Assembly (NCBI GenBank): GCA_964187785.1
Contig: OZ076421.1
Span: 49,042,001-49,106,000, forward strand
Origin: Amphiscolops sp. MND2022
Lineage: Eukaryota
Direction of reading: 5' to 3'
Length of the DNA: 64,000 bases
The position numbers were made by a program, and so were the translations under genes. Numbering within the stretch: the first letter of the stretch is position 1; each line of letters begins with the position of its first letter. The notes under the pieces are model-generated. The model was not told the DNA's origin, ran no database searches, and worked only from the letters and a program-made list of their open reading frames with translations. Shown in pieces: positions 31,101 to 58,786 of this stretch.

Positions 31101-32125
31101 GAGTAGTTGAAGTGTAGAATCAGAATGTTTCGAAAATAAAATTCTGTTCCAAAATTGATCAAGTTCCGCATTAGAATATATACCAGCATCTTGGGCTGTG
31201 AAAGTGTTAGGGTGTATTGTAGTTTTAATTTGTGTGAACATTAGTGGAGGTTTGCGTTTAATAGGTTCAGGTCCAAGAATGTAAAAATGTCATCAGAATC
31301 AGGATCTAGTTCAATACTGTTTCTTGGATTATTATCACATGTAATTGGAGTGGCATAGTCATAAGTTTGTCGTGCAATGGGGTCGACGTACATAAGAGTA
31401 TCTTTAAAATGTATAGGTATACGATCAAAGCAACGATCAGCTTTGTATAAAGGAGAAAGAAAATGAGGACAATCATAGAGCCAGGCGGTAGAGCCTTCGA
31501 CGTATAAAAAGTTACTACGATTTCCTGTTGGAAGGAAGTCATCAAGTTGAGGGTTTTGTACTGACATTGCGAGTATTGTAAGAAGTTGATTTCTTTCTAA
31601 TTCACATATTGTATGAAGAGTATTAAGTTCTTGTACAGTCACAGAACGAAAAAAGTGATTAATAGTGTAATCAATTTTGGTCATTATGTGTGCGTCATAG
31701 TCAATTATAGCAAAGTTGTTTGAAACGTTTAATGCAGGAAATACGAATTTGTTATTTGAATTGTCTAATACTATTTTGCCAGAAATATATTCATCAATCA
31801 CAGAGTGAGGATTATGTTGTCCTGTATGCATATTGAAACCATCAGTGTATGTAACAAAAAGATCTGAATATTGTGTAGAATAAAGTGGATCTGGTTTACC
31901 ACAGAATGTTCGAGCTGTAGGATATACTTCAAAACGTGAGAGACTGAGGTTGTTAGGATGTTGTGTATAGGGAGCATAAACATATGGATGTTTTGTACCT
32001 TTAATTCCAGAAGTGGTTTTGGGTTTTTTGAATATGGGGAATGGACAAAAGAATCAGTCAGTTTCAATCCAATATCGATCTTCGATTTTGGTCATACGTC
32101 CGAGGAAGTCTTGTAGTGTAAAAAA
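28200..32125 (-). mobile_element. Decayed 3' part of an env-bearing retroelement (env plus downstream ORF fragments)
   Basis: gB/chuvirus-G-like env fragment followed by several co-oriented broken ORFs and an AATAAA-containing repetitive end; no gag/pol or LTR pair seen. Confidence 0.55.
30858..32125 (-). pseudogene. Envelope glycoprotein fragment, chuvirus-G / herpes gB-like (class III fusogen)
   Basis: FCGKPDPLYSTQYSDLFV, ICELERNQLLTILAMS, WLYDC..CFDRIPI..YVDPI..TPITC, AGIYSNAELDQFWNRILF and a hydrophobic C-terminal stretch; one stop and frameshifts. Confidence 0.7.
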
Positions 32126-32589
32126 TTAAGCAAAAATTTTCGCTAAACCAAACAAGAGTAAGAGGGGTTAGGGTTAGGGTTATTTTTATGATCCTTCATA
32201 TTATCCTTCAATTGTACAGCACCTGCAAACGTTTAAATGCAAAAAGTCAATTTTCAATTTTCATTGTAAAGGGAAGGTTTTTAATTTCAGTTGAGCCACG
32301 AACTAAAAAGAAAATGAAAAGCACATCTTGTAAACTTTTTTTAGTTCACAATAATGATGAGTGGAACCAGTTAGAAAACATCCAGCTGAAGCTCAATAGG
32401 TAACAAATCCAAAGGGTACGCACGTTGCAATAAGTAGAAATCAAAAATAACATTCCATAAAACAAAAAGTGCTGTTTGAAAGTTAACTATTTCTATCGTC
32501 AGTACATTTGATTTTTTCTACACGACTTGTGTACCAATGTAACACTCCCCCATTCTATCGCTTATGCAATATAAAAACTCAAAAGCACA

Positions 32590-35500
32590 TGTCTCGAAAA
32601 AAGTTCACTGTCTGTAAAAACTTCTGAAGAATGTTTTTCTTCACCCATTCACTCACCTTATAATACTGTACTTACCTAATACCCTATCATTAAAATGTTT
32701 CCTTTATGTTTTTTAAATTTTGGTGCGTGAAAAACCTTGACGCCATAGTTTCTGTGATTCGGCAAATCGTCATTGATCTGAGTAGAAGCCTATACGAGTC
32801 ACAAATGAAGATTTAAAAACCAGAAGTTGAAGAAACATGGCCTATATGTGGAAACAATGCAGTTACTATAAAAAACACAGAATCCCAAACAACACATGGT
32901 GCAGTTGTTTGTGAAGATTTTCTATGGACCATAACAACCAACTTGATTTTATGTCTTTATATCATTTGAATTTTTATCTATAATAAATTATGTGAAGACA
33001 ATCCCCCCTTTGACACCAACAAAGTTACCAACATTGGAGGGTAAAAATGCTCTGTTCTCAAAAGTTCTCCAAAAAAATCCTATCTTGGTTTGTTCTTCGA
33101 ACTCACTCAACTCCAGATTATTGAAGAAACACGACTTAGTTCTCTATACAAACCTGGTGCCCAAACAACACATGATGAAGCTGTTCGTGGAGATTTTATT
33201 GGAAGGAAGTGAAGACGACAAGAACAATGGCTGATGACCCAAGAGCAAAGGGAGTACCCAAGACCAAAGCCTAAAGAGTTGGGGAGAAGTGTTACATTCC
33301 TAAAAAATGTTTCCAAAACTTGGACAGCGATGAACGTCAAAACCAGAGGTCGATTGTGTTGGCAATATTGAGCAAACTGAGCCAAAGGTTCCTCTAAGGA
33401 ACAATTTGGGTGCCTCAACTGTGATTTGGGAACCAGAAATGAAAAGTTGAAGGAATGCACCGGATGTCACGCTGTTTATAAACTTTGCCTGATGGCGGGA
33501 AACCGAATATTGCCCATGCGAGAGGCCATGCAAAAGAATTTGAATGTATGCAAGCTGTTCTTATTCCTCCCCACGGAGCTCCTCACCCCCTCCCCCAACT
33601 TTTCCCTTCATCATGAGCATCAAGAGGAAGAGAGTACCCAAGGCCAAGGCCTAAAAAGCTGGGCGAGAAGTATTACATTCTTGAAAAATGTCTGCATAAC
33701 TTGGGCAGCGATGAACGTCAATACCAACACTTGTAGCAAAAAGTGCAGTGGTCGAGGAACCAGACTCTGTTATAAACTTTCACAGTACGACAATCCTGGG
33801 AATGGAAGGGATCCACATCATTGATAAACCGAGCAAGATAATAAGGAGAGTCGGCTGCATCCACAACGAGTAATTCACGAGGACCAGTCTCAATACTATA
33901 CAACTTTTATCAGAATTGACCTAGAGACCATGGAGCGACTTAATTTTATATCTTTATATCATTTAAATTTTATTCATTAATAAATTATGTGAAGACAATC
34001 CCCCTTTAACACCAACAAAGCTACCAACATTGGAGGGTAAAAATGCTCTGTTCTCAAAAGTTCTCCAAAAAAACTCGCTCAACTCCAGATTATTGAAGAA
34101 ACACGACCTAGTTCTCTATACAAACCTGGTGCCCAAACAACACATAATGAAGCTGTTCGTGGAGATTTTATTGGAAGGCAGTGAAGACGACAAGAACAAT
34201 GGCGTCAACTCCAGCTTTAGCTGGCTTCCCATCCCTCCAAGTGTGCAGGGATCTGAGCAGAAGCCCTCACGAATCACAGATGAAGATTTGAAACTGGCAA
34301 CCAAACAGTTTATTGTCTGTACAAAAAAAGATACTGGAGAGGCTTCTTTATGACGAAAATGATTGACGCAGAGTGCTTTGTGAGACTGCCTGATCTTGGA
34401 TTAATTGTTCAAGTGAAGAAGTGGCGATTGAACAATGCCTTTTTCATAGGACCTGAACTTGAATTGATGTTTTTTCGACCCAGAAAGTGGTGTACACTTT
34501 TCAAAGATAATTCACTTCAGCAATACAAAACGATGACAATAGAGCATTCGAAGAATTTGCTGTACGATATTCAGAGGAAACCAATCAACTTCACGGTCAG
34601 AAAGTGAAAAGTTCGAGACGAAAAGAGCAATGGCGTCAACTACAGCTTTAGCTGGCTTTCCACCCCTCCAAGTGTGCAGGGTTTTCACTGTCTCGAACAA
34701 AGTTCACTGTCTGTAAAAACTTCTCAAGAATGTTTTTCTTCACCCATTCACTCACCTTATAATACTGTACTTACCTAATACCCTATTATTGAAATGTTTC
34801 CCTTATGTTTAAATTTTGTTGCGTGAAAAACCTTGACACCATAGTTTCTGCGATTCGGCAAATCGTCATTGATCTGAGCAGAAGCCTATACGAGTCACAA
34901 ATGAAGATTTGAAAACCAGAAGTTGAAGAAACATGGCCTATAAGTGGAAAGAATGCGGATACTGTAAAAAACACAGAATCCCAAACAACACATGGTGCAG
35001 TTGTTCGTGAAGATTTTCTATGGACCATAATCAACTAAATTTTATATCTTTATATCATTTAAATTTTATTCATTAATAAATTATGTGAAGACAATCCCCC
35101 CTTTAACACCAACAAAGTTACCAACATTGGAGGGTCAAAATGCTCTGTTCTCAAAAGTTCTCCAAAAAATCCTATCTTTGTTTGTGCTTTGAACTCACTC
35201 AACTCCAGAATATTGAAGAAACACGACCTAGTTCTCTATACAAACCTTGTGCCCAAACAACACATGATAAAGCTGTTCGTGGAGATTTTATTGGAAGGCA
35301 GTGAAGACGACAAGAACAAAGGCGTCAAATCCAGCTTAAGCTGGCTTCCCATCCCTCCAAGTGTGCAGGGATCTGAGCAGAATCCCTCACGAATAACAAA
35401 TGAAGATTTGAAATTGACAACCAAAAAGTTTGTGTGTACAAAAAAAGATACTGGAGAGGCTTCATTATGACGAAAATGACTGACGCAGAGTACCTTGTGA

Positions 35501-38500
35501 GACTGCCTGATCTTGGAATAATTGTTCAAGTGAAGAAGTGGCGATTAAGCATTGCCTTTTTCATAGGACCTGAACTTGAATTGATCAAGTTTTTTGGACT
35601 CAGAAAGTGGTGTACACTTTTCGAAGATAATTCACTTCAGCAATACAAAACGATGACAATAGAGCATTTGAAGAATTTGCTGTACGATATTCAGAGGAAA
35701 CCAATCAACTTCTTCACGGTCAGAAAGTGAGAAGTTCGAGACGAAAAGAGCAATGGCGTCAACTACAGCTTTAGCTGGCTTCCCACCCCTCCCAGTGTGC
35801 AGGGTTTTCACTGTCTCGAAAAAAGTTTACTGTCTCTAAAAACTTCTCAAGAATGTTTTTCTTCACCCATTCACTCAACTTATAATACTGTACTTACCTA
35901 ATACCCTATTATTGAAATGTTTCCCTTATGTTTTTAAAATTTTGTTGCGTGAAAAACCTTGACACCATAGTTTCTGCGATTCGGCAAATCGTCATTGATC
36001 TGAGCAGAAGCCTATACGAGTCACAAATGAAGATTTGAAAACCAGAAGTTGAAGAAAAATGGCCTATAAGTGGAAGGAATGCGGATACTGTAAAAAACAC
36101 AGAATCCCAAACAACACATGGTGCAGTTGTTCGTGAAGATTTTCTATGGACCATAATCAACTAAATTTTATATCTTTATATCATTTAAGTTTTATTCATT
36201 AATAAATTATGTGAAGACAATCCCCCCTTTAACACCAACAAAGTTACCAACATTGGAGGGTCAAAATGCTCTGTTCTCAAAAGTTCTCCAAAAAATCCTA
36301 TCTTTGTTTGTGCTTTGAACTCACTCAACTCCTGAATATTGAAGAAACACGACCTAGTTCTCTATACAAACCTTGTGCCCGAACAACACATGATAAAGCT
36401 GTTCGTGGAGATTTTATTGGAAGGCAGTGAAGACGACAAGAACAAAGGCGTCAGCTCCAGCTTAAGCTGGCTTCCCATCCCTCCAATTGTGCAGGGATCT
36501 GAGCAGAATCCCTCACGAATCACAAATGAAGATTTGAAATTGACAACCAGAAAGTTTGTTTGTACAAAAAAAAGATACTGGAGAGGCTTCGTTATGACGA
36601 AAATGACTGACGCAGAGTACCTTGTGAGACTGCCTGATCTTGGATTAATTGTTCAAGTGAAGAAGTGGCGATTAAGCAATGCCTTTTTCATAGGACCTGA
36701 ACTTGAATTGATCAAGTTTTTTGGACTCAGAAAGTGGTGTACACTTTTCAAAGATAATTCACTTCAGCAATACAAAACGACGACAATAGAGCTTTTGAAG
36801 AATTTGCTGTACGATATTCAGAGGAAACCAATCAACTTCTTCACGGTCAGAAAGTGAGAAGTTCGAGACGAAAAGAGCAATGGCGTCAACTACAGTTTTA
36901 GCTGGCTTCCCACCCCTCCAAGTGTGCAGGGTTTTCACTGTCTCGAAAAAAGTTTACTGTCTGTAAAAACTTCTCAAGAATGTTTTTCTTCACCCATTCA
37001 CTCAACTTATAGTACTGTACTTACCTAATACCCTATTATTGAAATGTTTCCCTTATGTTTTTTAAATTTTGTTGCGTGAAAAACCTTGACACCATAGTTT
37101 CTGCGATTCGGCAAATCGTCATTGATCTGAGCAGAAGCCTATACGAGTCACAAATGAAGATTTGAAAACCAGAAGTTGAAGAAACATGGCCTATAAGTGG
37201 AAAGAATGCGGATACTGTAAAAAACACAGAATCCCAAACAACACATGGTGCAGTTGTTCGTGAAGATTTTCTATGGACCATAATCAACTAAATTTTATAT
37301 CTTTATATCATTTAAATTTTATTCATTAATAAATTATGTGAAGACAATCCCCCCTTTAACACCAACAAAGTTACCAACATTGGAGGGTCAAAATGCTCTG
37401 TTCTCAAAAGTTCTCCAAAAAATCCTATCTTTGTTTGTGCTTTGAACTCACTCAACTCCAGAATATTGAAGAAACACGACCTAGTTCTCTATACAAACCT
37501 TGTGCCCAAACAACACATGATAAAGCTGTTCGTGGAGATTTTATTGGAAGGCAGTGAAGACGACAAGAACAAAGGCGTCAAATCCAGCTTAAGCTGGCTT
37601 CCCATCCCTCCAAGTGTGCAGGGATCTGAGCAGAATCCCTCACGAATAACAAATGAAGATTTGAAATTGACAACCAAAAAGTTTGTCTGTACAAAAAAAG
37701 ATACTGGAGAGGCTTCATTATGACGAAAATGACTGACGCAGAGTACCTTGTGAGACTGCCTGATCTTGGAATAATTGTTCAAGTGAAGAAGTGGCGATTA
37801 AGCAATGCCTTTTTCATAGGACCTGAACTTGAATTGATCAAGTTTTTTGGACTCAGAAAGTGGTGTACACTTTTCGAAGATAATTCACTTCAGCAATACA
37901 AAACGATGACAATAGAGCATTTGAAGAATTTGCTGTACGATATTCAGAGGTAACCAATCAACTCCTTCACGGTCAGAAAGTGAGAAGTTCGAGACGAAAA
38001 GAGCAATGGCGTCAACTACAGCTTTAGCTGGCTTCCCACCCCTCCAAGTGTGCAGGGTTTTCACTGTCTCGAAAAAAGTTTACTGTCTCTAAAAACTTCT
38101 CAAGAATGTTTTTCTTCACCCATTCACTCAACTTAAAATACTGTACTTACCTAATACCCTATTATTGAAATGTTTCCCTTATGTTTTTAAAATTTTGTAG
38201 CGTGAAAAACCTTGACACCATAGTTTCTGCGATTCGGCAAATCGTCATTGATCTGAGCAGAAGCCTATACGAGTCACAAATGAAGATTTGAAAACCAGAA
38301 GTTGAAGAAAAATGGCCTATAAGTGGAAGGAATGCGGATACTGTAAAAAACACAGAATCCCAAACAACACATGGTGCAGTTGTTCGTGAAGATTTTCTAT
38401 GGACCATAATCAACTAAATTTTATATCTTTATATCATTTAAGTTTTATTCATTAATAAATTATGTGAAGACAATCCCCCCTTTAACACCAACAAAGTTAC

Positions 38501-41500
38501 TAACATTGGAGGGTCAAAATGCTCTGTTCTCAAAAGTTCTCCAAAAAATCCTATCTTTGTTTGTGCTTTGAACTCACTCAACTCCTGAATATTGAATAAA
38601 CACGACCTAGTTCTCTATACAAACCTTGTGCCCAAACAACACATGATAAAGCTGTTCGTGGAGATTTTATTGGAAGGCAGTGAAGACGACAAGAACAAAG
38701 GCGTCAGCTCCAGCTTAAGCTGGCTTCCCATCCCTCCAAGTGTGCAGGGATCTGAGCAGAATCCCTCACGAATCACAAATGAAGATTTGAAATTGACAAC
38801 CAGAAAGTTTGTTTGTACAAAAAAAAGATACTGGAGAGGCTTCGTTATGACGAAAATGACTGACGCAGAGTACCTTGTGAGACTGCCTGATCTTGGATTA
38901 ATTGTTCAAGTGAAGAAGTGGCGATTAAGCAATGCCTTTTTCATAGGACCTGAACTTGAATTGATCAAGTTTTTTGGACTCAGAAAGTGGTGTACACTTT
39001 TCAAAGATAATTCACTTCAGCAATACAAAACGACGACAATAGAGCTTTTGAAGAATTTGCTGTACGATATTCAGAGGAAACCAATCAACTTCTTCACGGT
39101 CAGAAAGTGAGAAGTTCGAGACGAAAAGAGCAATGGCGTCAACTACAGTTTTAGCTGGCTTCCCACCCCTCCAAGTGTGCAGGGTTTTCACTGTCTCGAA
39201 AAAAGTTTACTGTCTGTAAAAACTTCTCAAGAATGTTTTTCTTCACCCATTCACTCAACTTATAGTACTGTACTTACCTAATACCCTATTATTGAAATGT
39301 TTCCCTTATGTTTTTTAAATTTTGTTGCGTGAAAAACCTTGACACCATAGTTTCTGCGATTCGGCAAATCGTCATTGATCTGAGCAGAAGCCTATACGAG
39401 TCACAAATGAAGATTTGAAAACCAGAAGTTGAAGAAAAATGGCCTATAAGTGGAAAGAATGCGGATACTGTAAAAAACACAGAATCCCAAACAACACATG
39501 GTGCAGTTGTTCGTGAAGATTTTCTATGGACCATAATCAACTAAATTTTATATCTTTATATCATTTAATATTTATTCATTAATAAATTATGTGAAGACAA
39601 TCCCCTCTTTAACACCAGCAAAGTTACCTACATTGGAGGGTCAAAATGCTCTGTTCTCAAAAGTTCTCCAAAAAATCCTATCTTTGTGCTTTGAACTCAC
39701 TCAACTCCAGAATATCGAAGAAACACGACCTAGTTCTCTATACAAACCTTGTGCCCAAACAACACATGATAAAGCTGTTCGTGGAGATTTTATTGGAAGG
39801 CAGTGAAGACGACAAGAACAAAGGCGTCAACTCCAGCTTAAGCTGGCTTCCCATCCCTCCAAGTGTGCAGGGATCTGAGCAGAATCCCTCACGAATCACA
39901 AATGAAGATTTGAAACTGACAACCAAAAAGTTTGTCTGTACAAAAAAAAGATACTGGAGAGGCTTCGTTATGACGAAAATGACTGACGCAGAGTACCTTG
40001 TGAGACTGCCTGATCTTGGATTAATTGTTCAAGTGAAGAAGTGGCGATTAAGCAATGCCTTTTTCATAGGACCTGAACTTGAATTGATCAAGTTTTTTGG
40101 ACTCAGAAATCGGTGTACACTTTTCAAAGATAATTCACTTCAGCAATACAAAACGACGACAATAGAGCATTTGAAGAATTTGCTGTACGATATTCAGAGG
40201 AAACCAATCAACTTCTTCACGGTCAGAAAGTGAGAAGTTCGAGACGAAAAGAGCAATGGCGTCAACTACAGTTTTAGCTGGCTTCCCACCCCTCCAAGTG
40301 TGCAGGGTTTTCACTGTCTCGAAAAAAGTTTACTGTCTGTAAAAACTTCTCAAGAATGTTTTTCTTCACCCATTCACTCAACTTATAGTACTGTACTTAC
40401 CTAATACCCTATTATTGAAATGTTTCCCTTATGTTTTTTTAATTTTGTTGCGTGAAAAACCTTGACACCATAGTTTCTGCGATTCGGCAAATCGTCATTG
40501 ATCTGAGCAGAAGCCTATACGAGTCACAAATGAAGATTTGAAAACCAGAAGTTGAAGAAAAATGGCCTATAAGTGGAAAGAATGCGGATACTGTAAAAAA
40601 CACAGAATCCCAAACAACACATGGTGCAGTTGTTCGTGAAGATTTTCTATGGACCATAATCAACTAAATTTTATATCTTTATATCATTTAAATTTTATTC
40701 ATTAATAAATTATGTGAAGACAATCCCCCCTTTAACACCAACAAAGTTACCAACATTGGAGGGTCAAAATGCTCTGTTCTCAAAAGTTCTCCAAAAAATC
40801 CTATCTTTGTTTGTGCTTTGAACTCACTCAACTCCAGAATATCGAAGAAACACGACCTAGTTCTCTATACAAACGTTGTGCCCAAACAACACATGATAAA
40901 GCTGTTCGTGGAGATTTTATTGGAAGGCAGTGAAGACGACAAGAACAAAGGCGTCAACTCCAGCTTAAGCTGGCTTCCCATCCCTCCAAGTGTGCAGGGA
41001 TCTGAGCAGAATCCCTCACGAATCACAAATGAAGATTTGAAACTGACAACCAAAAAGTTTGTCTGTACAAAAAAAAGATACTGGAGAGGCTTCGTTATGA
41101 CGAAAATGACTGACGCAGAGTACCTTGTGAGACTGCCTGATCTTGGATTAATTGTTCAAGTGAAGAAGTGGCGATTAAGCAATGCCTTTTTCATAGGACC
41201 TGAACTTGAATTGATCAAGTTTTTTGGACTCAGAAAGTGGTGTACACTTTTCGAAGATAATTCACTTCAGCAATACAAAACGATGACAATAGAGCATTTG
41301 AAGAATTTGCTGTACGATATTCAGAGGAAACCAATCAACTTCTTCACGGTCAGAAAGTGAGAAGTTCGAGACGAAAAGAGCAATGGCGTCAACTACAGCT
41401 TTAGCTGGCTTCCCACCCCTCCAAGTGTGCAGGGTTTTCACTGTCTCGAAAAAAGTTTTCTGTCTGTAAAAACTTCTCAAGAATGTTTTTCTTCACCCAT

Positions 41501-44500
41501 TCACTCAACTTATAATACTGTACTTACCTAATACCCTATTATTAAAATGTTTCCCTTATGTTTTTTAAATTTTGTTGCGTGAAAAACCTTGACACCATAG
41601 TTTCTGCGATTCGGCAAATCGTCATTGTTCTGAGCAGAAGCCTATACGAGTCACAAATGAAGATTTGAAAACCAGAAGTTGAAGAAACATGGCCTATATG
41701 TGGAAACAATGCAGTTACTATAAAAAACACAGAATCCCAAACAACACATGGTGCAGTTGTTTGTGAAGATTTTCTATGGACCATAACAACAAACTTAATT
41801 TTATATCTTTATAACATTTAAATTTTATTCATTAACAAATTATGTGAAGACAATCTCCCCTTTAACACCAACAAAGTTACCAACATTGGAGGGTAAAAAT
41901 GCTCTGTTCTCAAAAGTTCTCCAAAAAAATCCTATCTTTGTTCGTGCTTCGAACTCACTCAACTCCAGATTATCGAAGAAACACGACTTAGTTCTCTATA
42001 CAAACCTGGTGCCCAAACAACACATGATAAAGCTGTTCGTGGAGAGTTTATTGGAAGGAAGTGAAGACGACAATAACAATGGCTGATGACCCAAGAGCAA
42101 AGGGAGTACCCAAGACCAAGGCCTAAAGAATTGGGGAGAAGTGTTACATTCCTAAAAAATGTCTCCATAACTTGGACAGCGATGAACGTCAAAACCAGAG
42201 GTCGATTGTGTTGGCAATATTGAGCAAACTGAGTCAAAGGTTCCTCTAAGGAACAATTTGGGTACCTCAAAAGTGATTTGGAAACCAGAAATGAAAAGTT
42301 GAAGGAATGCACCGGATGTCACGCTGTTTATAAACTTTGCCTCGATGGCGGGAAACCGAATATTGCCCATGCAAGAGGCCATGCAAAAGAATTGGAATAA
42401 ATGCAAGCTGTTCTTATTCCTCCCCACGGAGCTCCTCACCCCCTCCCCCAACTCTCCCTTCATCATGGGCATCAAGAGGAAGGGAGTACCCAAGGCCAAG
42501 GCCTAAAAAGTTGAGCGAGAAGTATTACATTCTTGAAAATGTCTGCATAACTTGGGCTGCGATGAACGTCAATACCAACACTCGTAGCAAAAAGCGCAGT
42601 GGTCGAGGAACTAGACTCTTTGTTATAAACTTTCACAGGACGACAATCCTGGGAAAGGAAGGGATCCACATCATTGATAAACCGCGCAAGACAATGAGGA
42701 GAGTCGGTTGCATCCACAACGAGTGATTCACGAGGACCAGGCTCAGTACTATACAACTTTTATCAGAATTGACCTAGAGACCATGGAGCGACTTAATTTT
42801 ATATCTTTATATCATTTAGATTTTATTCATTAATTATGTGACGACAATCCCCCTTAAACACCAACAAAGTTAACAACATTGGAGGGTAAAAATGCTCTGT
42901 TCTCAAAAGTTCTCCAAAAAAATCCTATCTTTGTTTGTGCTTCGAACTCACTCAACTCCAGATTATTGAAGAAACACGACTCAGTTCTCTATACAAACCC
43001 GGTGCCCAAACAACACATGATAAAGCTGTTCGTGGAGATTTTATTGGAAGGCAGTGAAGACGACAAGAACAAAGGCGTCAACTCCAGCTTAAGCTGGCTT
43101 CCCATCCCTCCAAGTGTGCAGGGATCTGAGCAGAATCCCTCACGAATCACAAATGAAGATTTGAAACTGACAACCAAAAAGTTTGTCTGTACAAAAAAAA
43201 AGATACTGGAGAGGCTTCGTTATGACGAAAATGACTGACGCAGAGTACCTTGTGAGACTGCCTGATCTTGGATTAATTGTTCAAGTGAAGAAGTGGCGAT
43301 TAAGCAATGCCTTTTTCATAGGACCTGAACTTGAATTGATCAAGTTTTTTGGACTCAGAAAGTGGTGTACACTTTTCGAAGATAATTCACTTCAGCAATA
43401 CAAAACGATGACAATAGAGCATTTGAAGAATTTGCTGTACGATATTCAGAGGAAACCAATCAACTTCTTCACGGTCAGAAAGTGAGAAGTTCGAGACGAA
43501 AAGAGCAATGGCGTCAACTACAGCTTTAGCTGGCTTCCCACCCCTCCAAGTGTGCAGGGTTTTCACTGTCTCGAAAAAAGTTTTCTGTCTGTAAAAACTT
43601 CTCAAGAATGTTTTTCTTCACCCATTCACTCAACTTATAATACTGTACTTACCTAATACCCTATTATTAAAATGTTTCCCTTATGTTTTTTAAATTTTGT
43701 TGCGTGAAAAACCTTGACACCATAGTTTCTGCGATTCGGCAAATCGTCATTGTTCTGAGCAGAAGCCTATACGAGTCACAAATGAAGATTTGAAAACCAG
43801 AAGTTGAAGAAACATGGCCTATATGTGGAAACAATGCAGTTACTATAAAAAACACAGAATCCCAAACAACACATGGTGCAGTTGTTTGTGAAGATTTTCT
43901 ATGGACCATAACAACAAACTTAATTTTATATCTTTATAACATTTAAATTTTATTCATCAACAAATTATGTGAAGACAATCTCCCCTTTAACACCAACAAA
44001 GTTACCAACATTGGAGGGTAAAAATGCTCTGTTCTCAAAAGTTCTCCAAAAAAATCCTATCTTTGTTCGTGCTTCGAACTCACTCAACTCCAGATTATTG
44101 AAGAAACACGACTTAGTTCTCTATACAAACCTGGTGCCCAAACAACACATGATAAAGCTGTTCGTGGAGAGTTTATTGGAAGGAAGTGAAGACGACAATA
44201 ACAATGGCTGATGACCCAAGAGCAAAGGGAGTACCCAAGACCAAGGCCTAAAGAATTGGGGAGGAGTGTTACATTCCTAAAAAATGTCTCCATAACTTGG
44301 ACAGCGATGAACGTCAAAACCAGAGGTCGATTGTGTTGGCAATATTGAGCAAACTGAGTCAAAGGTTCCTCTAAGGAACAATTTGGGTACCTCAAAAGTG
44401 ATTTGGAAACCAGAAATGAAAAGTTGAAGGAATGCACCGGATGTCACGCTGTTTATAAACTTTGCCTCGATGGCGGGAAACCGAATATTGCCCATGCAAG

Positions 44501-47500
44501 AGGCCATGCAAAAGAATTGGAATAAATGAAAGCTGTTCTTATTCCTCCCCACGGAGCTCCTCACCCCCTCCCCCAACTCTCCCTTCATCATGGGCATCAA
44601 GAGGAAGGGAGTACCCAAGGCCAAGGCCTAAAAAGTTGGGCGAGAAGTATTACATTCTTGAAAATGTCTGCATAACTTGGGCAGCGATGAACGTCAAAAC
44701 CAGAGGTCGATTGTGTTGGCAATATTGAGCAAACTGAGTCAAAGGTTCCTCTAAGGAACAATTTGGGTACCTCAAAAGTGATTTGGAAACCAGAAATGAA
44801 AAGTTGAAGGAATGCACCGGATGTCACGCTGTTTATAAACTTTGCCTCGATGGCGGGAAACTGAATATTGCCCATGCAAGAGGCCATGCAAAAGAATTGG
44901 AATAAATGCAAGCTGTTCTTATTCCTCCCCACGGAGCTCCTCACCCCCTCCCCCAACTCTCCCTTCATCATGGGCATCAAGAGGAAGGGAGTACCCAAGG
45001 CCAAGGCCTAAAAAGTTGGGCGAGAAGTATTACATTCTTGAAAATGTCTGCATAACTTGGGCAGCGATGAACGTCAATACCAACACTCGTAGCAAAAAGC
45101 GCAGTGGTCGAGGAACTGGACTCTTTGTTATAAACTTTCACAGGACGACAATCCTGGGAAAGGAAGGGATCCACATCATTGATAAACCGAGCAAGACAAT
45201 GAGGAGAGTCGGTTGCATCCACAACGAGTGATTCACGAGGACCAGGCTCAGTACTATACAACTTTTATCAGAATTGACCTAGAGACCATGGAGCGACTTA
45301 ATTTTATATCTTTATTTCATTTAGATTTTATTCATTAATTATGTGACGACAATCCCCCTTTAACACCAACAAAGTTACCAACATTGGAGGGTAAAAATGC
45401 TCTGTTCTCAAAAGTTCTCCAAAAAATCCTATCTTTGTTTGTGCTTCGAACTCGCTCAGCTCCAGATTATCGAAGAAACACGACCTAGTTCTCTATACAA
45501 ACCTGGTGCCCAAACAACACATAATAAAGCTGTTCGTGGAGATTTTATTGGAAGGCAGTGAAGACGACAAGAACAATGGCGTCAACTCCAGCTTTAGCTA
45601 ACTTCCCATCCCTCCAAGTGTGCAGGGATCTGAGCAGAAGCCCTCACGAATCACAAATGAAGATTTTGAAACTGACAACCAAAAAGTTTGTCTGTACAAA
45701 AAAGATACTGGAGAGGCTTCGTTATGACGAAAATGACTGACACAGAGTACCTTGTGAGACTGCCTGATCTTGGATTAATTGTTCAAGTGAAGAAGTGGCG
45801 ATTAAGCAATGCCTTTTTCATAGGACCTGAACTTGAATTGATCAAGTTTTTTGGACTCAGAAAGTGGTGTACACTTTTCAAAGATAATTCACTTCAGCAA
45901 TACAAAACGACGACAATAGAGCATTTGAAGAATTTGCTGTACGATATTCAGAGGAAACCAATCAACTTCTTCACGGTCAGAAAGTGAGAAGTTCGAGACG
46001 AAAAGAGCAATGGCGTCAACTACAGCTTTAGCTGGCTTCCCACCCCTCCAAGTGTGCAGGGTTTTCACTGTCTCGAAAAAAGTTCACTGTCTCTAAAAAC
46101 TTCTGAAGAATGTTTTTCTTCACCCATTCACTCAACTTATAATACTGTACTTACCTAATACCCTATTATTAAAATGTTTCCCTTTTGTTTTTTAAATTTT
46201 GTTGCGTGAAAAACTTTGACACCATAGTTTCTGCTAATCGGCAAATCGTCATTGATCTGAGCAGAAGCCTATACGAGTCACAAATGAAGATTTGGAAACC
46301 AGAAGTTGAAGAAACATGGCCTATATGTGGAAACAATGCAGTTACTATAAAAAACACAGAATCCCAAACAACACATGGTGCAGTTGTTTGTGAAGATTTT
46401 CTGTGGACCATAATCATTATTTTATATCTTTATATCATTTGAATTTTATTCATTAATAAATTATGTGAAGACAATCCCCCCTTTGACACCAACAAAGTTA
46501 CCAACATTGTAGGGTAAAAATGCTCTGTTCTCAAAAGTTCTCCAAAAAAATCCTATCTTGGTTTGTTCTTCGAACTCACTCAACTCCAGATTATTGAAGA
46601 AACACGACTTAGTTCTCTATACAAACCTGGTGACCAAACAACACATGATAAAGCTGTTCGTGGAGATTTTATTGGAAGGCAGTAAAGACGACAAGAACAA
46701 TGGCGTCAACTCCAGCTTTAGCTGGCTTCCCATACCTCCAAGTGTGCAGGGATCTGAGCAGAAGCCCTCACGAATCACAAATGAAGATTTGAAACTCACA
46801 ACCAAAAAGTTTATTGTCTGTACAAAAAAAGATACTGGAGAGGCTTCGTTATGACGAAAAATGATTGACCACATAGTACTTTGTGAGACTGCCTGATCTT
46901 GGATTAATTGTTCAAGTGAAGAAGTGGCGATTAAGCAATGCCTTTTTCATAGGACCTGAACTTGAATTAATCAAGTTTTTTCGACCCAGAAAGTGGTGTA
47001 CACTTTTCGAAGATAATTCACTTCAGCAATACAAAACGATGACAATAGAGCAATTGAAGAGTTTGCTGTACGATATTCAGAGGAAACCAATCAACTTCTT
47101 CACGGTCAGAAAGTGAGAAGTTCGAGACGAAAAGAGCAATGGCGTCAACTACAGCATTAGCTGGCTTCCCACCCCTCCAAGTGTACAGGGTTTTCACTGT
47201 CTCGAAAAAAGTTCACTGTCTGTAAAAACTTCTCAAGAATGTTTTTCTTCACCCATTCACTCACCTTATAATACTGTACTTACCTAATACCCTATTATTG
47301 AAATGTTTCCCTTATGTTTTTTAAATTTTGTTGCGTGAAAAACCTTGACACCATAGTTTCTGCGATTCGGCAAATCGTCATTGATCTGAGCAGAAGCCTA
47401 TACGAGTCACAAATGAAGATTTGAAAACCAGAAGTTGAAGAAACATGGCCTATAAGTGGAAAGAATGCGGATACTGTGAAAAACACAGAATCCCAAACAA

Positions 47501-50500
47501 CACATGGTGCAGTTGTTCGTGAAGATTTTCAATGGACCATAATCATAATTTTATATCTTTATATCATTTAAATTTTATTCATTAATAAATTATGTGAAGA
47601 CAATCCCCCCTTTAACACCGACAAAGTTACCAACATTGGAGGGTAAAAATGCTCTGTTCTCAAAAGTTCTCCAAAAAATCCTATCCTTGTTTGTGCTTCG
47701 AACTCACTCAACTCCAGATTCTCGAAGAAACACGACCTAGTTCTCTATACAAACCTGGTGCCCAAACAACACATAATAAAGCTGTTCGTGGAGATTTTAT
47801 TGGAAGGCAGTGAAGACGACAAGAACAATGGCGTCAACTCCAGCTTTAGCTGGCTTCCCATCCCTCCAAGTGTGCAGGGATCTGAGCAGAAGCTCTCACG
47901 AATCACAAATGAAGATTTGAAACTGACAACCAAAAAGTTTATTGTGTGTACAAAAAAAAGATACTGGAGAGGCTTCGGTATGACGAAAATGATTGACGCA
48001 GAGTACTTTGTGAGACTGCCTGATCTTGGATTAATTGTTCAAGTGAAGAAGTGGCGATTAAGCAATGCCTTTTTCATAGGACCTGAACTTGAATTAATCA
48101 AGTTTTTTCGACCCAGAAAGTGGTGTACACTTTTCGAAGATAATTCACTTCAGCAATACAAAACGATGACAATAGAGCAATTGAAGAGTTTGCTGTACGA
48201 TATTCAGAGGAAACCAATCAACTTCTTCACGGTCAGAAAGTGAGAAGTTCGAGACGAAAAGAGCAATGGCGTCAACTACAGCATTAGCTGGCTTCCCACC
48301 CCTCCAAGTGTACAGGGTTTTCACTGTCTCGAAAAAAGTTCACTGTCTGTAAAAACTTCTCAAGAATGTTTTTCTTCACCCATTCACTCACCCTATAATA
48401 CTGTACTTAACCTAATACCCTATTATTGAAATGTTTCCCTTATGTTTTTTTTTAAAATTTTGTTGCGTGAAAAACCTTGACACCATAGTTTCTGCGATTC
48501 GGCAAGTCGTCATTGATCTGAGCAGAAGCCTATACGAGTCACAAATGAAGATTTGAAAACCAGAAGATGAAGAAACATGGCCTATAAGTGGAAAGAATGC
48601 GGATACTGTGAAAAACACAGAATCCCAAACAACACATGGTGCAGTTGTTCGTGAAGATTTTCAATGGACCATAATCATTATTTTATATCTTCATATCATT
48701 TAAATTCTATTCATTAATAAATTATGTGAAGACAATCCCCCCTTTAACACCAACAAAGTTACCAACATTGGAGGGTAAAAATGCTCTGTTCTCAAAAGTT
48801 CTCCAAAAAATCCTATCTTTGTTTGTGCTTCGAACTCACTCAACTCCAGATTATTGAAGAAACACGACCTAGTTCTCTATACAAACCTTGTGCCCAAACA
48901 ACACATGATAAAGCTGTTCGTGGAGATTTTATTGGAAGGCAGTGAAGACGACAAGAACAATGGCGTCAACTCCAGCTTAAGCTGGCTTCCCATCCCTCCA
49001 AGTGTGCAGGGATCTGAGCAGAAGCCCTTACGAATCACAAATGAAGATTTGAAACTGACAACCAAAAAGTTTGTCTGTACAAAAAAAAGATACTGGAGAG
49101 GCTTCGTTATGACGAAAATGGCTGACGCAGAGTACCTTGTGAGACTGCCTGATCTTTGATTAATTGTTCAAGTGAAGAAGTGGCGATTAAGCAATGCCTT
49201 TTTCATAGGACCTGAACTTGAATTGATGAAGTTTTTTGGACTCAGAAAAAGGTGTACACTTTTCAAAGATAATTCACTTCAGCAATACAAAAGGATGACA
49301 ATAGAGCATTTGAAGAATTTGCTCTACGATATTCAGAGGAAAGCAATCAACTTCTTCACGGTCAGAAAGTGAGAAGTTCGAGACGAAAAGAGCAATGGCG
49401 TCAACTACAGCTTTAGCTGGCTTCCCACCCCTCCAAGTGTGCAGGGTTTTCACTGTCTCGAAAAAAGTTCACTGTCTCTAAAAACTTCTGAAGAATGTTT
49501 TTCTCCACCCATTCACTCACCTTATAATACTGTACTTACCTAATACCCTATTATTAAAATGTTTCCCTTATGTCTTTTAAATTTTGTTGCGTGAAAAACT
49601 TTGACACCATAGTTTCTGCGATTCGGCAAATCGTCATTGACCTGAGCAGAAGCCCATACGAGTCACAAATGAAGATTTGAAAACCAGAAGTTGAAGAAAC
49701 ATGGCCTATATGTGGAAACAATGCAGTTACTATAAAAAACACAGAATCCCAAACAACACATGGTGCAGTTGTTTGTGAAGATTTTCAATGGACCATAACA
49801 ACCAACTTGCTTTTATGTCTTTATATCATTTAAATTTTATTCATTAATAAATTATGTGAAGACAATCCCCCCTTCGACACCAACAAAGTTACCAACATTG
49901 GAGGGTAAAAATGCTCTGTTCTCAAAAGTTCTCCAAAAAAATCCTATCTTTGTTTGTGCTTCGAACTCACTCAACTCCAGATTATTGAAGAAACACGACT
50001 TAGTTCTCTATACAAACCTGGTGCCCAAACAACACATGATGAAGCTGTTCGTGGAGATTTTGTTAGGAAGGAAGTGAAGACGACAAGAACAATGGCTGAT
50101 GACCCAAGAGCAAAGGGAGTACCCAAGGCCAAGGCCTGAAGAGTTGGAGAAGTGTTACATTCCTAAAAAATGTCTCCATAACTTGTGCAGCGATGAACGT
50201 CAAAACCAGAGGTCGATTGTGTTGGCAATATTGAGCAAACTGAGCCAAAGGTTCCTCTAAGGAACAATTTGGGTGCCTCAACTGTGATTTGGAACCCAGA
50301 AATGAAAAAATGAAGGAATGCACCGGATGTCACGCTGTTTATAAACTTTGCCTCGATGGCGGGAAACCGAATATTGCCCATGCAAGAGGCCATGCAAAAG
50401 AATTAGAATAAATGCAAGCTGTTCTTATTCCTCCCCACGGAGCTCCTCACCCGCTCCCCCAACTCTCCCTTCATCATGGGCGACAAGAGGAAGGGAGTAC

Positions 50501-52923
50501 CCAAGCCCAAGGCCTAAAAAGTTGGGCGAGAAGTATTACATTCTTGAAAAATGTCTGCATAACTTGGGCAGCGATGATCGTCAATACCAACACTTGTAGC
50601 AAAAAGTGCAATGGTCGAGGAACCAGACTCTTTGTTATAAACTTTCACAGGACGACAATCCTGGGAATGGAAGGGATCCACATCATTGATAAACCGAGCA
50701 AGACAATGAGGAGAGTCGGTTGCATCCACAACGAGTAATTCACGAGGACCAGTCTCAATACTATACAACTTTTATCAGAATTGACCTAGAGACCATGAAG
50801 CGACTTATTTTTATCTTTACATCATTTAAATTTTATTCATTAATAAATTATGTGAAGACAATCCCCCTTTAACACCAAAGTTACCAACATTGGAGGGTAA
50901 AAATGCTCTGTTCTCAAAAGTTCTCCAAAAAAATCCTATCTTTGTTTGTGCTTCGAACTCACTCAACTCCAGATTATTGAAGAAACACGACTTAGTTCTC
51001 TATACAAACCTGGTGCCCAATTAACACATGATGAAGCTGTTCGTGGAGATTTTGTTAGGAAGGAAGTGAAGACGACAAGAACAATGGCTGATGACCCAAG
51101 AGCAAAGGGAGTACCCAAGGCCAAGGCCTAAAGAGTTGGAGAAGTGTTACATTCCTAAAAAATGTCTCCATAACTTGTGCAGCGATGAACGTCAAAACCA
51201 GAGGTCGATTGTGTTGGCAATATTGAGCAAACTGAGCCAAAGGTTCCTCTCAGGAACAATTTGGGTGCCTCAACTGTGATTTGGAACCCAGAAATGAAAA
51301 AACGAAGGAATGCACCGGATGTCACGCTGTTTATAAACTTTGCCTCGATGGCGGGAAACCGAATATTGCCCATGCAAGAGGCCATGCAAAAGAATTAGAA
51401 TAAATGCAAGCTGTTCTTATTCCTCCCCACGGAGCTCCTCACCCGCTCCCCCAACTCTCCCTTCATCATGGGCGACAAGAGAAAGGGAGTACCCAAGCCC
51501 AAGGCCTAAAAAGTTGGGCGAGAAGTATTACATTCTTGAAAAATGTCTGCATAACTTGGGCAGCGATGATCGTCAATACCAACACTTGTAGCAAAAAGTG
51601 CAGTGGTCGAGGAACCAGACTCTTTGTTATAAACTTTCACAGGACGACAATCCTGGGAATGGAAGGGATCCACATCATTGATAAACCGAGCAAGACAATG
51701 AGGAGAGTCGGTTGCATCCACAACGAGTAATTCACGAGGACCAGTCTCAATACTATACAACTTTTATCAGAATTGACCTAGAGACCATGAAGCGACTTAT
51801 TTTTATCTTTACATCATTTAAATTTTATTCATTAATAAATTATGTGAAGACAATCCCCTTTTAACACCAAAGTTACCAACAATGGAGGGTAAAAATGCTC
51901 TGTTCTCAAAAGTTCTCCAAAAAAATCTTTGTTTGTGCTTCGAACTCGCTCAACTCCAGATTATCGAAAAAACACGACCTAGTTCTCTATACAAACTTGG
52001 TGCCCAAACAACACATAATAAAGCTGTTCATGGAGATTTTATTGGAAGGCAGTAAAGACGACAAGAACAATGGCGTCAACTCCAGCTTTAGCTGGCTTCC
52101 CATCCCTCCAAGTGTGCAGGGATCTGAGCAGAATCCCTCACGAATCACAAATGAAGATTTGAAACTGACAACCAAAAAGTTTGTCTGTACAAAAAAAGAT
52201 ACTGGAGAGGCTTCGTTATGACGAAAATGACTGACGCAGAGTACCTTGTGAGACTGCCTGATCTTGGATTAATTGTTCAAGTGAAGAAGTGGCGATTAAG
52301 CAATGCCTTTTTCATAGGACCTGAACTTGAATTGATCAAGTTTTTTGGACTCAGAAAGTGGTGTACACTTTTCAAAGATAATTCACTTCAGCAATACAAA
52401 ACGATGACAATAGAGCATTTGAAGAATTTGCTGTACGATATTCAGAGGAAACCAATCAACTTCTTCACGGTCAGAAAGTGAGAAGTTCGAGACGAAAAGA
52501 GCAATGGCGTCAACTACAGCTTTAGCTGGCTTCCCACCCCTCCAAGTGTGCAGGGTTTTCACTGTCTCGAAAAAAGTTTACTGTCTGTAAAAACTTCTCA
52601 AGAATGTTTTTCTTCACCCATTCACTCACCTTATAATACTGTACTTACCTAATACCCTATTATTGAAATGTTTCCCTTATGTTTTTTAAATTTTGTTGCG
52701 TGAAAAACCTTGACACCATAGTTTCTGCGATTCGGCAAATCGTCATTGTTCTGAGCAGAAGCCTATACGAGTCACAAATGAAGATTTGAAAACCAGAAGT
52801 TGACGAAACATGGCCTATAAGTGGAATGAATGCGGATACTGTAAAAAACACCGAATCCCAACCAAAATGGTGCAGTTGTTCGTGAAGATTTTCTATGGAC
52901 CATAATCAACTTAATTTTATATC
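32590..52923 (+). repeat. 20.3-kb tandem array: partial unit + 18 units (13 type A ~1.10-1.13 kb, 5 type B ~0.99 kb, one B with a 380-bp internal duplication)
   Basis: Anchor TGTGA(A/C)GACAATC at 32991(B), 33988, 35084, 36210, 37337, 38463, 39590, 40713, 41843(B), 42837, 43968(B*), 45342, 46464, 47593, 48725, 49855(B), 50851(B), 51843; near-identical ORFs recur in the ORF track with the same spacing. Confidence 0.97.
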
Positions 52924-53616
52924 GGACTTGGTTATAGATGACGACTTGGTTGCAGCGAGGGACTTGGTTTTAGTTGAGGGGCGTCCCGACGCTGTTGCTT
53001 TCAATGTTTTTTGATAGAAATCACTTTCTGTTTCTTTTGGAACAATGTAGTTTTTGGCAGCAGTTTCTTTGGTGTGGGACGACTGAATTGCGTGGAAAGC
53101 ACGAGCCTCGGTGGGAATTTCATCAGAATGATAATGAAAATTTGTGTCCCACATTTTTCGAATGGATGTCCCGTTGTAGTCTTTCTCCAGAACCTCGTCG
53201 TCAAAAAACTTGCTGAGGACCTTTCGAATAGTTGCGGGCATAGAATGATCTTTTTTGTCTTTTGAAGTGGCAAAAACTAGTTTCAGGCGAAAACCACACT
53301 TCTTGAATTCGGACATCAAACGCTGAAGCCAAGGGAATTGTTCTTCGCTAATTTTGATCTCTTGATCGTAGTAATGACCCGTTTTATGTTTGTCAGATGT
53401 GCGTTTCCCATGCTTCTTGATTCTCTTCACATCGTCATAGGTCAAATCCATTAAGGGTCCAACACGTCCATTCATTGTACTTGACAGAGTTATGAAATTG
53501 AAAACTTTCAGCTCTTCAAATGACAAGTTTTCCTCGGCGAGATCTTGGTTGCAAAGTTCTTCAATTCTTTTCACAACGAATGTCACTCCTTCCATCTCCG
53601 GTACTTTTGTGAACAA
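52906..53616 (-). CDS. Tyrosine recombinase catalytic domain (R-K-R-H-Y retained), 236-aa open segment
   Basis: Motif-by-motif alignment with the YR at 12083-11204; the last codons run into array DNA. Confidence 0.85.
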   Translation of the reverse strand: MFTKVPEMEGVTFVVKRIEELCNQDLAEENLSFEELKVFNFITLSSTMNGRVGPLMDLTYDDVKRIKKHGKRTSDKHKTGHYYDQEIKISEEQFPWLQRLMSEFKKCGFRLKLVFATSKDKKDHSMPATIRKVLSKFFDDEVLEKDYNGTSIRKMWDTNFHYHSDEIPTEARAFHAIQSSHTKETAAKNYIVPKETESDFYQKTLKATASGRPSTKTKSLAATKSSSITKSDIKLS

Positions 53617-54657
53617 TTCTCGCTTCGAACGCTTCTTCTCCTTCAGGGAACTTTTCTGATACTTCCTTCTGACATCTTAAATGATTTGTTGCGAATCATT
53701 TTCCATAATCGCAGGAATCGCGGTTCTTTTGTAGGCCTTAATGAATTCTACCATCTTCTCGAAGAGAATCAGATAATTCACCATTGTCGACCGGGTGATG
53801 TATCTTTCGCTGAGGTAAGTTTTAACGAAAACAGCTAAACTGGTTGGTTCTGCAAAACTGTTGGAGGCATCGATTGCTCGACAGAGAAAAGAAAACTGGG
53901 TTGTTGAAACGTTCCACTTTCCTGAGACATCCCCATCCTCAAAGAGACCTTTTTCATGTTTGACAAGTTTCCACGAGTTCTTTGTGAGGCAAGAGAAATT
54001 GGGTCCGGAACTGGTTAACAGCAATTTTGATATTCTGAGGAAACAAATCAACTTCTTCACGGTCATGAATACGTTCAATTGGATGGTTTTTTGGGTGCTT
54101 TCCTCGATCGCCGAATTTAACTGAACAATTATCACACTGGTAACATCGATGCGTTTTGAGGGTGGAATGGTATTAGGAGATGAACTTCAGCAGCTTGTCC
54201 TCGGATCCAATGGAGTGTTTGTTGGTCAAATGGTCCCTCATTTTCTTCACTTCTTTGTGACACAGCAGACACGTCTCCACCTCTGGTCGCTTCGGTTTGT
54301 TGTTTTTAGACACTACTGTGATACGAAAGTCAATCTCTGAGCTGTGGCTTTCATTGGAACTTGTGTCGTTGGAGTCTGATTCTCTTTGTTCTACATACTC
54401 ACTTTCTGACTGTCCCATAAAATCAAATTCAACAGTTTGTGCTACTTCCACAATTTCTGTAGCTCCAACAGGAGGAAGATCGACTAAGTCCAATGACGTG
54501 CCTTCTCGAATAAACTTCGACTCAATGACGGTTCACCAGCAAAATTCATCATTGCAGCTTCATTCTCAGGACTTTCATTTTGTTCCCATGTTTGATGGTC
54601 ATCAGACGAAGAGGGTAAATGTTGGTTTCTTTGTTGCGTTTGAGTTCTTAGTTGGGT

Positions 54658-54790
54658 AGGTTCTTGGTTACTTTGTTGTGTTGGTTCGCGGTTACTTTGT
54701 TGTGTTGGTTCTTGGTTACTTTGTTGGGTTGGTTCTTAGTTACTTCGTTGTGTTGGTTCTTGGTTACTTTGTTGGGTTGGTTCTTGGTTT
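54658..54790 (-). repeat. 24-bp minisatellite (~5-6 copies) encoding (NQEPTQQS)n within the SET-YR linker
   Basis: GTTCTTGGTTACTTTGTTG(T/G)GTTG repeats; one copy has CAA->TAA. Confidence 0.85.
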
Positions 54791-54814
54791 CTCGTCATTG
54801 ATACTTGGTTACCT

Positions 54815-57519: not shown

Positions 57520-57770
57520 TGATGTTTTGAACTGGAACTGAACTGGGATTGACAAACGGAACTGTGACAAAAATTGACTGTATTGATTGATAGACTTTCG
57601 ATTCAGATGGATTGACAAATGGAACTGTGACAAAAATTGACTGTATTCAAATGACTGGACTGAAAGATGAAGTTTTGAATTGGAACTTAACTGGGATTGA
57701 CAAACGGAACTGTGACAAAAGTTGACTGTGATGGACCTTCGATTCAGATGAATTTCGAAGTGCAAACGAT
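57520..57770. repeat. Degenerate tandem repeats upstream of SET2
   Basis: GGATTGACAAA(C/T)GGAACTGTGACAAAA(A/G)TTGACTGT occurs three times. Confidence 0.7.
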
Positions 57771-57919
57771 AAAATTGATCTGAAAAACGCAAAACATTTT
57801 GAATACTGGACTATTTGATAGATTGAGTAATCGGTAACGGTAGCTGTAGCAGTCAAACCCTTGATTTAGATATTATACGAGAATGTTTGTTGGTATATTT
57901 TACTGATTTGAGGGGATTA

Positions 57920-58471: not shown

Positions 58472-58496
58472 AGAGTTGGGCGAGAAGTATTCCATT

Positions 58497-58742
58497 TGTA
58501 CAATCTAAACATGCATAATTTGACTTAAATTTGATTCATAATCTTCTCTCAATTTTGCTTGCCGCGCTTGTGAAGAAAGTTGGATGAATTTGTAGAATTT
58601 ATTCACACTTGTTCACATTTATTCATCATATCACTCTTTTGTTAATAAAAGTTGAAAGACAGTCAGCTTTGTCAGCTCAGCCAGCTTTGTTTGTTGAGTA
58701 AACAAACAAATTCTCAAGTACCTTTCAAGGATCGTAGCATCA
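58497..58742 (+). repeat. BEL/Pao LTR 1 (246 bp)
   Basis: TG...CA, internal AATAAA, followed by putative PBS TTTTGGTGGCCATAGAGAGG; repeated 4027 bp downstream. Confidence 0.9.
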
Positions 58743-58786
58743 TTTTGGTGGCCATAGAGAGGCATACACTGCTCTAACTCATAAAG

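Follow-up and report, generated by a model that had tools for sequence, protein, structure and literature searches.

A tandem array of two mosaic unit types, probably derived from a SET-ZnF-tyrosine-recombinase element, in the genome of Amphiscolops sp.

Satellite DNAs that are derived from mobile elements, or carried by them, include the Helentron-borne arrays of oyster and the Tetris/DINE-type expansions of Drosophila (PMC9659126, PMC7492417). These are the closest known kind to the locus described here, a tandem array found in a 64,000-nucleotide stretch of contig OZ076421.1 of Amphiscolops sp. MND2022 (assembly GCA_964187785.1, positions 49,042,001–49,106,000; hereafter ‘the window’, to whose first letter positions refer), where it adjoins a copy of SET-YR2, an element encoding SET, ZnF and tyrosine recombinase (YR) domains. 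Like those satellites, the array consists of head-to-tail units, contains pieces of an element in its monomer, lies beside that element at more than one locus, displays higher-order duplicates and drifts neutrally. It differs from them in its monomer of 1.0–1.1 kb with two alternative cassettes, in its many short pieces (which include coding fragments of the element and a fragment of an unlinked host gene), and in the type of element to which it is linked. Our preferred interpretation, to which we assign a probability of roughly 0.6, is that the array is an element-derived complex satellite.

Some other systems share part of this organization. In Pack-MULE, Helitron and CACTA transduplication, unlinked host-gene fragments are joined with element sequence into non-functional mosaics; these are bounded by the known termini of the element, and tandem amplification of them is unusual. 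The array likewise joins a host-gene fragment to element sequence, but as a tandem array beside an element whose ends are undefined; we know of no record of gene-fragment capture by tyrosine-recombinase elements. Bacterial integrons place a tyrosine-recombinase gene beside head-to-tail cassettes, with the array upstream of the gene. Here, too, a YR gene adjoins a head-to-tail series of alternative cassettes, but the unit borders carry no conserved site, the array begins and ends at different unit phases, its cassettes have decayed and it lies 3′ of the recombinase gene.

The element itself most invites comparison with the Cryptons (PMC3212892), since it encodes a tyrosine recombinase but no reverse transcriptase, and terminal inverted repeats are not obvious in it. 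Unlike SET-YR2, Cryptons as described lack a SET domain (PMC3212892). Their ends are defined by short terminal direct repeats, which could not be established for SET-YR2. A term search of that paper returned no satellite or associated tandem array for Cryptons. Our literature search found no description of a SET-ZnF-tyrosine-recombinase element, and the type appears to be undescribed.

Architecture and composition of the array

The initial annotation of the window, made from its letters and open reading frames (ORFs), had claimed a 20-kb tandem array. Self-BLASTN, mapping of a leader sequence common to all units, and word depth confirmed this array at 32586–52923, where one partial unit is followed by 18 head-to-tail units. 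Each unit consists of the ~291-bp leader followed by either cassette A or cassette B, giving A units of ~1127 bp (13 copies) and B units of ~998 bp (five copies) that are arranged in the order partial A, then B A A A A A A A B A B′ A A A A B B A. Identity within a type, as judged by self-BLASTN, is 95–99.6% for A units and 95–99% for B units. The B′ unit contains a 380-bp internal duplication, which was found independently by Tandem Repeats Finder (TRF). Higher-order duplicates are also present, pairing 35034 with 37287 (99.4%), 36160 with 38413 (99.6%), and 40663–42577 with 42791–44702 (98.5%). The left end of the array falls exactly on a module junction, directly after the YR 3′-flank piece described below.

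Four public runs of the same organism carry the array, and yield contigs of up to 163 kb that mark them as DNA runs. Word depth over the array in these runs (a rough guide to copy number only) is ~11–15 times that of the unique SET-YR2 flank, and joints from an A unit into a leader-A and into a leader-B unit both occur. The depth roughly fits the assembled copy number and is consistent with an array that has not been inflated by assembly.

We searched for the relatives of individual pieces by BLASTN within the 64-kb window, where matches had expectation (E) values between 1e-8 and 1e-58. The units proved to be patchworks of short, co-oriented pieces related to a SET-YR element, as had been claimed, and each piece named in the initial annotation matched its partner on the same strand, all of the listed matches being plus/plus. 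They comprise a MYND-like piece (33346–33479 and 58226–58357, 87%), a SET piece (33727–33915 and 56858–57047, 84%, with other B units reaching 88%), a motif piece of the B′ unit (44628–44656 and 58468–58496, 93%), a YR2 coding piece (35686–35725 and 54029–54069, 38/41 identical) and a Tudor-like piece (34919–35007 and 57941–58031, 83.5%); A units additionally match 26058–26155 and 26200–26255 at 86–89%.

A short unit-like ORF (P0005) led to a second locus (L002, also recovered as L004), in the assembly that also holds the host gene P0003 described below, at which the SET-YR2 copy is uninterrupted, with a 485-aa SET-ZnF frame (Pfam SET, E 4e-8) and a 421-aa YR frame. The apparently intact gene occupies L002 13011–15857 (L004 11056–13902), and could serve as the reference for the element family. 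The monomer of the array shares mobile-element sequence with this copy at three places: the SET core (92%), a 41-bp piece from the ZnF/YR frame boundary (92.7%) and the sequence that natively follows the YR gene on its 3′ side (97%, positions 710–778 of the A consensus), the last of which has an internal duplicate at 40937–40999 (90%). The SET piece of the B units is 92% identical to the L002 gene versus 83–88% to the copy that adjoins the array, whose frameshifts sit in its SET part. Judged by these identities the adjacent copy is not the donor, the intact relative matching the SET piece better, which agrees with one of the earlier proposals, that the donor was a relative. The SET-YR2 copy of the window is distantly related to the intact SET-YR1 gene found at 10.4–14.6 kb (25–30% amino acid identity). 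The 41-bp shared piece was considered as a possible attachment site and rejected, because the array/element junction lies elsewhere.

Two stretches of the window that had been proposed as sources did not hold up in that role. The block common to both SET-YR2 copies stops cleanly at 57916 (52924–57916 in the window), and the right flank at L002 is unrelated, host-like sequence; because the shared block ends there, 57917–58496 is an array-family stretch, so that the supposed ‘Tudor-MYND gene’ at 57.9–58.5 kb is a diverged relic outside the element. The MYND match of the ORF at 58 kb falls below the Pfam curated cut-off, and a source gene for the MYND-like piece was looked for and not found. The stretch at 26 kb is likewise a diverged, non-coding relic outside the SET-YR2 block, in which a 44-bp gap (26156–26199) was considered as an intron and rejected. 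A third relic, a module copy, is located at ~18 kb of a further locus, L006.

The claim that all pieces keep the strand of their source stands for every piece whose orientation can be defined, but not as strong evidence. Only the SET, YR and YR 3′-flank pieces derive from one oriented source, and three such pieces would be co-oriented by chance in about one case in four; co-orientation is therefore weak evidence.

The largest identifiable piece of the units, which was not recognized in the initial annotation, is by its sequence a fragment of an unlinked host gene. An exhaustive profile-free search with the one intact 222-codon frame of an A unit (40692–41357) identified P0003, a 424-aa product, with 90% identity over residues 58–146. 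At the DNA level the A consensus matches the gene at 95.3% over 279 bp. The longest exact run shared by the array and P0003 measures 73 nt, and runs of 23 nt or more together cover 225 nt of the gene. Within the array the SET piece runs antisense to the P0003 piece. The P0003 gene is a single, intronless open frame in a contig (L001) of another assembly, in the European Nucleotide Archive (ENA); a ~98–99% identical allele with the same flanks, except for a polymorphic ~7.8-kb insertion, is found at L008, and a homologue with 51% identity, P0004, is found in a further assembly. On this sequence evidence, P0003 behaves as a conserved single-copy host gene that is unlinked to the array.

The P0003/P0004 gene loci (L001 10001–11275, L008 4978–6252 and L003 10001–11194) are unannotated and encode ~400–424 aa, with a helical C-terminal domain that is confidently predicted (predicted local distance difference test (pLDDT) 73–87 at residues ~250–360). 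The ‘Tudor-like’ label is a lead only, which rests on language-model features, scoring 0.87 for P0003 and 0.72 for the unit frame, together with a predicted five-strand arrangement. The AlphaFold2 model of P0003 has a mean pLDDT of 44, with low confidence across the putative Tudor region. Pfam searches of the unit ORFs, P0003 and P0004 returned nothing at threshold, and a PDB sequence search with P0003 returned no match.

Assembly, spread and decay of the mosaic

The order of the pieces had been described as shuffled, and it does differ from that of both the neighbouring and the intact L002 element copies, even with circular permutation allowed. In the A unit, positions 219–262, 272–337 and 337–380 are copies of 1074–1118, 707–772 and 965–1008, an order that results when two tandem units are read through collinearly and parts of them are deleted. 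In the B unit, 300–405 is repeated at 681–786, and the MYND-like piece or the SET piece follows at the same nucleotide. The element-derived pieces are ordered YR, 3′ flank, SET in the array and 3′ flank, YR, SET in the element; the former can be obtained from two head-to-tail element copies with deletions, an arrangement for which the two head-to-tail SET-ZnF-YR genes of L006 provide a precedent. Because the re-use of modules is collinear with a tandem template, we favour repeated duplication and deletion in direct repeats, and the scrambled order requires neither template switching nor circles.

The second locus has its own array, built from the same modules with a period of ~1244 bp and a length of ~3.9 kb once a copia insertion is discounted. 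Like the window array it lies 3′ of the YR gene and shares its orientation, but its modules are ordered differently. In a maximum-likelihood (ML) tree of the SET piece, the L002 array copy groups with all five B copies of the window in one clade (ultrafast bootstrap (UFboot) 95, approximate likelihood-ratio test (aLRT) 93) that stands apart from both SET genes, and it is nested within the diversity of the window B units. Both loci share the junction at which the module tail meets the P0003 fragment; a tree of the P0003 fragment itself gave no resolution. The single SET-piece clade and the shared junction indicate a single origin of the mosaic, which then spread along with the element. A larger unit may have transposed, or segmental duplication may have carried the mosaic, after which each array would have turned over independently. 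The known sites of the family are these two arrays together with the relics at 26 and 58 kb of the window and at 18 kb of L006. The inserted copia-type element at L002, a long terminal repeat (LTR) retroelement, occupies 4155–9133.

We propose the following sequence of events. A chimeric segment of ~1–2 kb, comprising the SET core, the 41-bp ZnF/YR piece, the YR 3′ flank, the 279-bp P0003 fragment, the MYND-like fragment and the non-coding modules, would have formed once, presumably downstream of the SET-ZnF-YR2 recombinase gene. Repeated duplication and internal deletion in direct configuration would have re-used and re-ordered these modules to give the common leader and the two cassettes, as the module pattern suggests, with at least one inter-locus capture needed in addition. 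Unequal crossing-over, by analogy with satellite dynamics, may then have amplified and partly homogenized the units into the observed 18-unit pattern, and the mosaic has travelled with the SET-YR2 element to at least two loci.

The units now appear to evolve neutrally and to encode nothing functional. The full relic frame is open in one of the 13 A units, all others having frameshifts or stops. Among 12 aligned full-length A units, variable sites in this frame are distributed over codon positions 1, 2 and 3 as 28, 28 and 24, and their density is equal inside the frame and in the rest of the unit. The lack of codon-position bias and the broken frames together indicate that the array drifts neutrally as DNA. 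A word-based homologue search with the A frame returned only the window's own product, and the B frame returned nothing; a match of the leader frame to P0007 (6519 aa) was dropped as a low-identity repeat match only.

Several points weigh against the interpretation of the array as an element-derived satellite. A source was looked for and none found for the leader, and ~60% of the B unit is without an identified source. Given enough tandem copies, any order of co-oriented pieces can be obtained, so that parsimony favours the deletion model but does not prove it; elsewhere in the genome there may still be a contiguous donor in which the pieces follow this order. The model offers no route for the entry of the P0003 fragment. 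The termini of SET-YR2 are undefined, and an array inside the mobile unit and a segmental duplication both fit. Finally, the absence of function was inferred only from drift of the relic frame, and a role at the RNA level needs no frame. If the satellite interpretation is correct, the locus would offer a base-by-base record of a long-monomer satellite assembled from fragments of a mobile element and an unlinked host gene, which then travelled with the element.

Alternative interpretations

A small-RNA source locus, which would be compatible with a satellite origin, is a possible but unlikely alternative. A transcript, for example a minus-strand read-through from SET-YR2, would be processed to RNAs of the PIWI-interacting (piRNA) or small interfering (siRNA) type directed against the SET-YR2 family, the Tudor-like gene or both. 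Because the array starts 18 bp past the YR stop codon, such a read-through RNA would carry the 13 repeats of the P0003 fragment in antisense and the SET and YR pieces in sense. The exact runs shared with P0003, and those of up to 47 nt shared with the intact L002 SET-YR2, provide near-perfect complementarity to candidate targets that is long enough for small RNAs, which speaks to feasibility only; those shared with the adjacent element copy, however, do not exceed 23 nt. The surrounding transposable elements (TEs) are in mixed orientation, and scans of the window found no Rfam family and no tRNA. Precedents exist in Su(Ste) and AT-chX of Drosophila melanogaster, tandem repeats for which the corresponding papers report abundant piRNAs (PMC6486647, PMC7874207). 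Both are, like the present array, tandem non-coding repeats with a host-gene fragment (from the germline gene vasa for AT-chX, from a Tudor-like gene here), but they are known as piRNA sources, whereas the array is known from DNA alone and belongs to a non-Drosophila animal. If it were transcribed into small RNAs, the array would resemble Su(Ste) and AT-chX outside flies, with the Tudor-like gene as a possible target; if not, it would show clearly how a satellite can arise neutrally next to a recombinase element.

Template switching (of the type ascribed to fork stalling and template switching (FoSTeS) or microhomology-mediated break-induced replication (MMBIR)), or templated filler repair, might alternatively have put the mosaic together in a single complex event or a small number of them, a route that we consider quite unlikely. 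The many short pieces (40–280 bp), one of them from an unlinked gene, would fit such events, as would the 0 to ~10 bp of imperfect microhomology at readable junctions (for example that between the module tail and P0003), although the junctions of only a few donors could be read. Splice signals at the donor flanks are absent, save for AG/GT around the P0003 piece. Template switching usually gives mixed orientations, however, whereas all definable pieces here are direct, and deletions in tandem templates account for most of the re-ordering. An origin by splicing, as in a processed retrocopy, was rejected, since AG/GT occurs at no donor flank other than that of the P0003 piece, to which the SET piece is antisense.

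A circle route, in which deletion derivatives of the element were excised as circles and then copied by a rolling-circle mechanism or reintegrated by the recombinase beside its own gene in the manner of an integron, seems distinctly doubtful. It would account for the placement of the array, which at both SET-YR2 loci adjoins the same side of the YR gene with matching orientation, for the combination of leader and alternative cassettes, and for the nesting of the L002 array piece within window B-unit diversity; Cryptons are thought to move as circles (PMC3212892). The array ends are nonetheless out of phase, starting at A position ~779 and ending at leader position ~14 (the left end may be secondarily truncated), and the cassettes carry decayed frames. 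No k-mer was enriched at the 23 module junctions relative to random positions, nor was a common motif found there, which argues against a conserved border site, and small inverted repeats occur only at chance level. The window array/element junction resembles a secondary truncation within the YR C-terminal repeat; a 6-bp repeat (GGGGAC) is found at the ends of the L002 block, and only 3 bp of it in the window. Simple insertion of SET-YR2 into a pre-existing array was rejected, because no unit type contains its two flanks side by side.

We consider it improbable that the array is a working part of the SET-YR2 element, such that YR read-through RNA antisense to the Tudor-like host gene would be processed to small RNAs that either dampen a host chromatin or small-RNA reader or serve the host as a trap against the element family. 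A functional tandem gene family, suggested by unit frames of 70–222 codons, or an assembly artefact, to which near-identical repeats are prone, are the least credible explanations, given the frameshifts and stops in most copies, the even distribution of variable sites over codon positions, the lack of homologues beyond P0003, and the agreement of word depth and unit joints with the assembly in four DNA runs.

Feature coordinates and neighbouring elements

The features of the array and its surroundings are collected in Table 1, in which the pieces are given for one A unit and for the reference B unit.

Table 1. Coordinates of the array, its units and pieces, and related features of the window.
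Feature	Position	Strand	Remarks
Relic of the array family, isolated and diverged	26058–26755	+	L002-type module order; non-coding
Whole tandem array	32586–52923	+	Self-BLASTN, leader mapping, word depth
Partial A unit	32586–32940	+	Consensus ~779–1127
B unit 1	32941–33937	+	
Seven A units	33938–41792	+	Starts 33938, 35034, 36160, 37287, 38413, 39540, 40663; includes 2-unit higher-order duplication
Leader, reference copy	40663–40953	+	~291 bp; common to A and B units
222-codon relic frame	40692–41357	+	Only A copy in which it is fully open
Fragment of host Tudor-like gene P0003	41036–41311	+	Codons ~51–146, sense on +; 95.3% identity, exact runs ≤73 nt
41-bp SET-YR2 piece	41316–41355	+	From ZnF/YR frame boundary; 92.7% to both element copies
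Native YR 3′-flank piece	41372–41440	+	97% to L002 12945–13013
Dispersed non-coding modules	41444–41761	+	Common to window 26058–26740 and 57941–58031, and to L006 ~17990–18143
B unit 2	41793–42790	+	Reference B unit
MYND-like piece	42198–42331	+	84–87% to 58226–58357
SET-domain core fragment	42578–42768	-	Coding sense on -; B consensus 92% to intact L002 SET gene
A unit	42791–43917	+	42791–44702 (A plus most of next B) duplicates 40663–42577, 98.5%
B′ unit	43918–45295	+	380-bp internal duplication
Four A units	45296–49804	+	Starts 45296, 46414, 47543, 48675
Two B units	49805–51794	+	Starts 49805 and 50803; mutual identity 98.6%
Final A unit and ~14 nt of next leader	51795–52923	+	Abuts truncated 3′ end of SET-YR2
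Adjacent SET-ZnF-YR2 copy	52924–57916	-	3′-truncated, frameshifted, with insertion; 94% to L002 13173–16520
High-copy insertion splitting SET-YR2	54815–56458	+	~1.65 kb; absent from L002
Relic of the array family, diverged	57917–58496	+	A tail then B cassette modules; cut by BEL/Pao at 58497

The insertion that splits the adjacent SET-YR2 copy lies inside a 24-bp repeat tract of the element and contains plus-strand ORFs with a Cys/His motif, for which no Pfam match was found. Its word depth in the DNA runs is ~10–140 times that of the unique flank, indicating a high-copy element, and the insertion-free joint is present in the DNA reads.

Tandem repeats also occur shortly downstream of the YR gene in other SET-YR members, including some in the assembly of a related species, which holds L003, L005 and L007 (L005 14831–15902, L006 11563–11932 and 13503–13958, L007 11347–12818). 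At L006 the two head-to-tail SET-ZnF-YR genes belong to different subfamilies (8357–11152 and 12880–15926, ~1.7 kb apart) and are followed by short tandem repeats and array-family modules; at L007 a weak match to the 3′-flank module (A 714–777) directly follows the YR gene.

The array is bordered on the left by what is probably a decayed env-bearing retroelement (28001–32585). Its minus-strand ORFs are broken, and one shows a match to a viral fusion glycoprotein of the Monjiviricetes type (Pfam PF24664, E 2e-9); GC skew across this stretch is very strong (+0.38 to +0.43) and AT skew almost nil. To the right of the 58-kb relic, 58497–64000 is occupied by a BEL/Pao retroelement (DUF1759, Peptidase_A17 and reverse transcriptase), in which a 1482-bp direct repeat (58497–59978 and 62524–64000, 99.7%) takes in the start of gag, suggesting two partial tandem copies rather than ordinary LTRs. 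In the left part of the window, (ATA)n tracts reported by TRF at 6559–6596 and 16998–17076 flank the SET-YR1 region.

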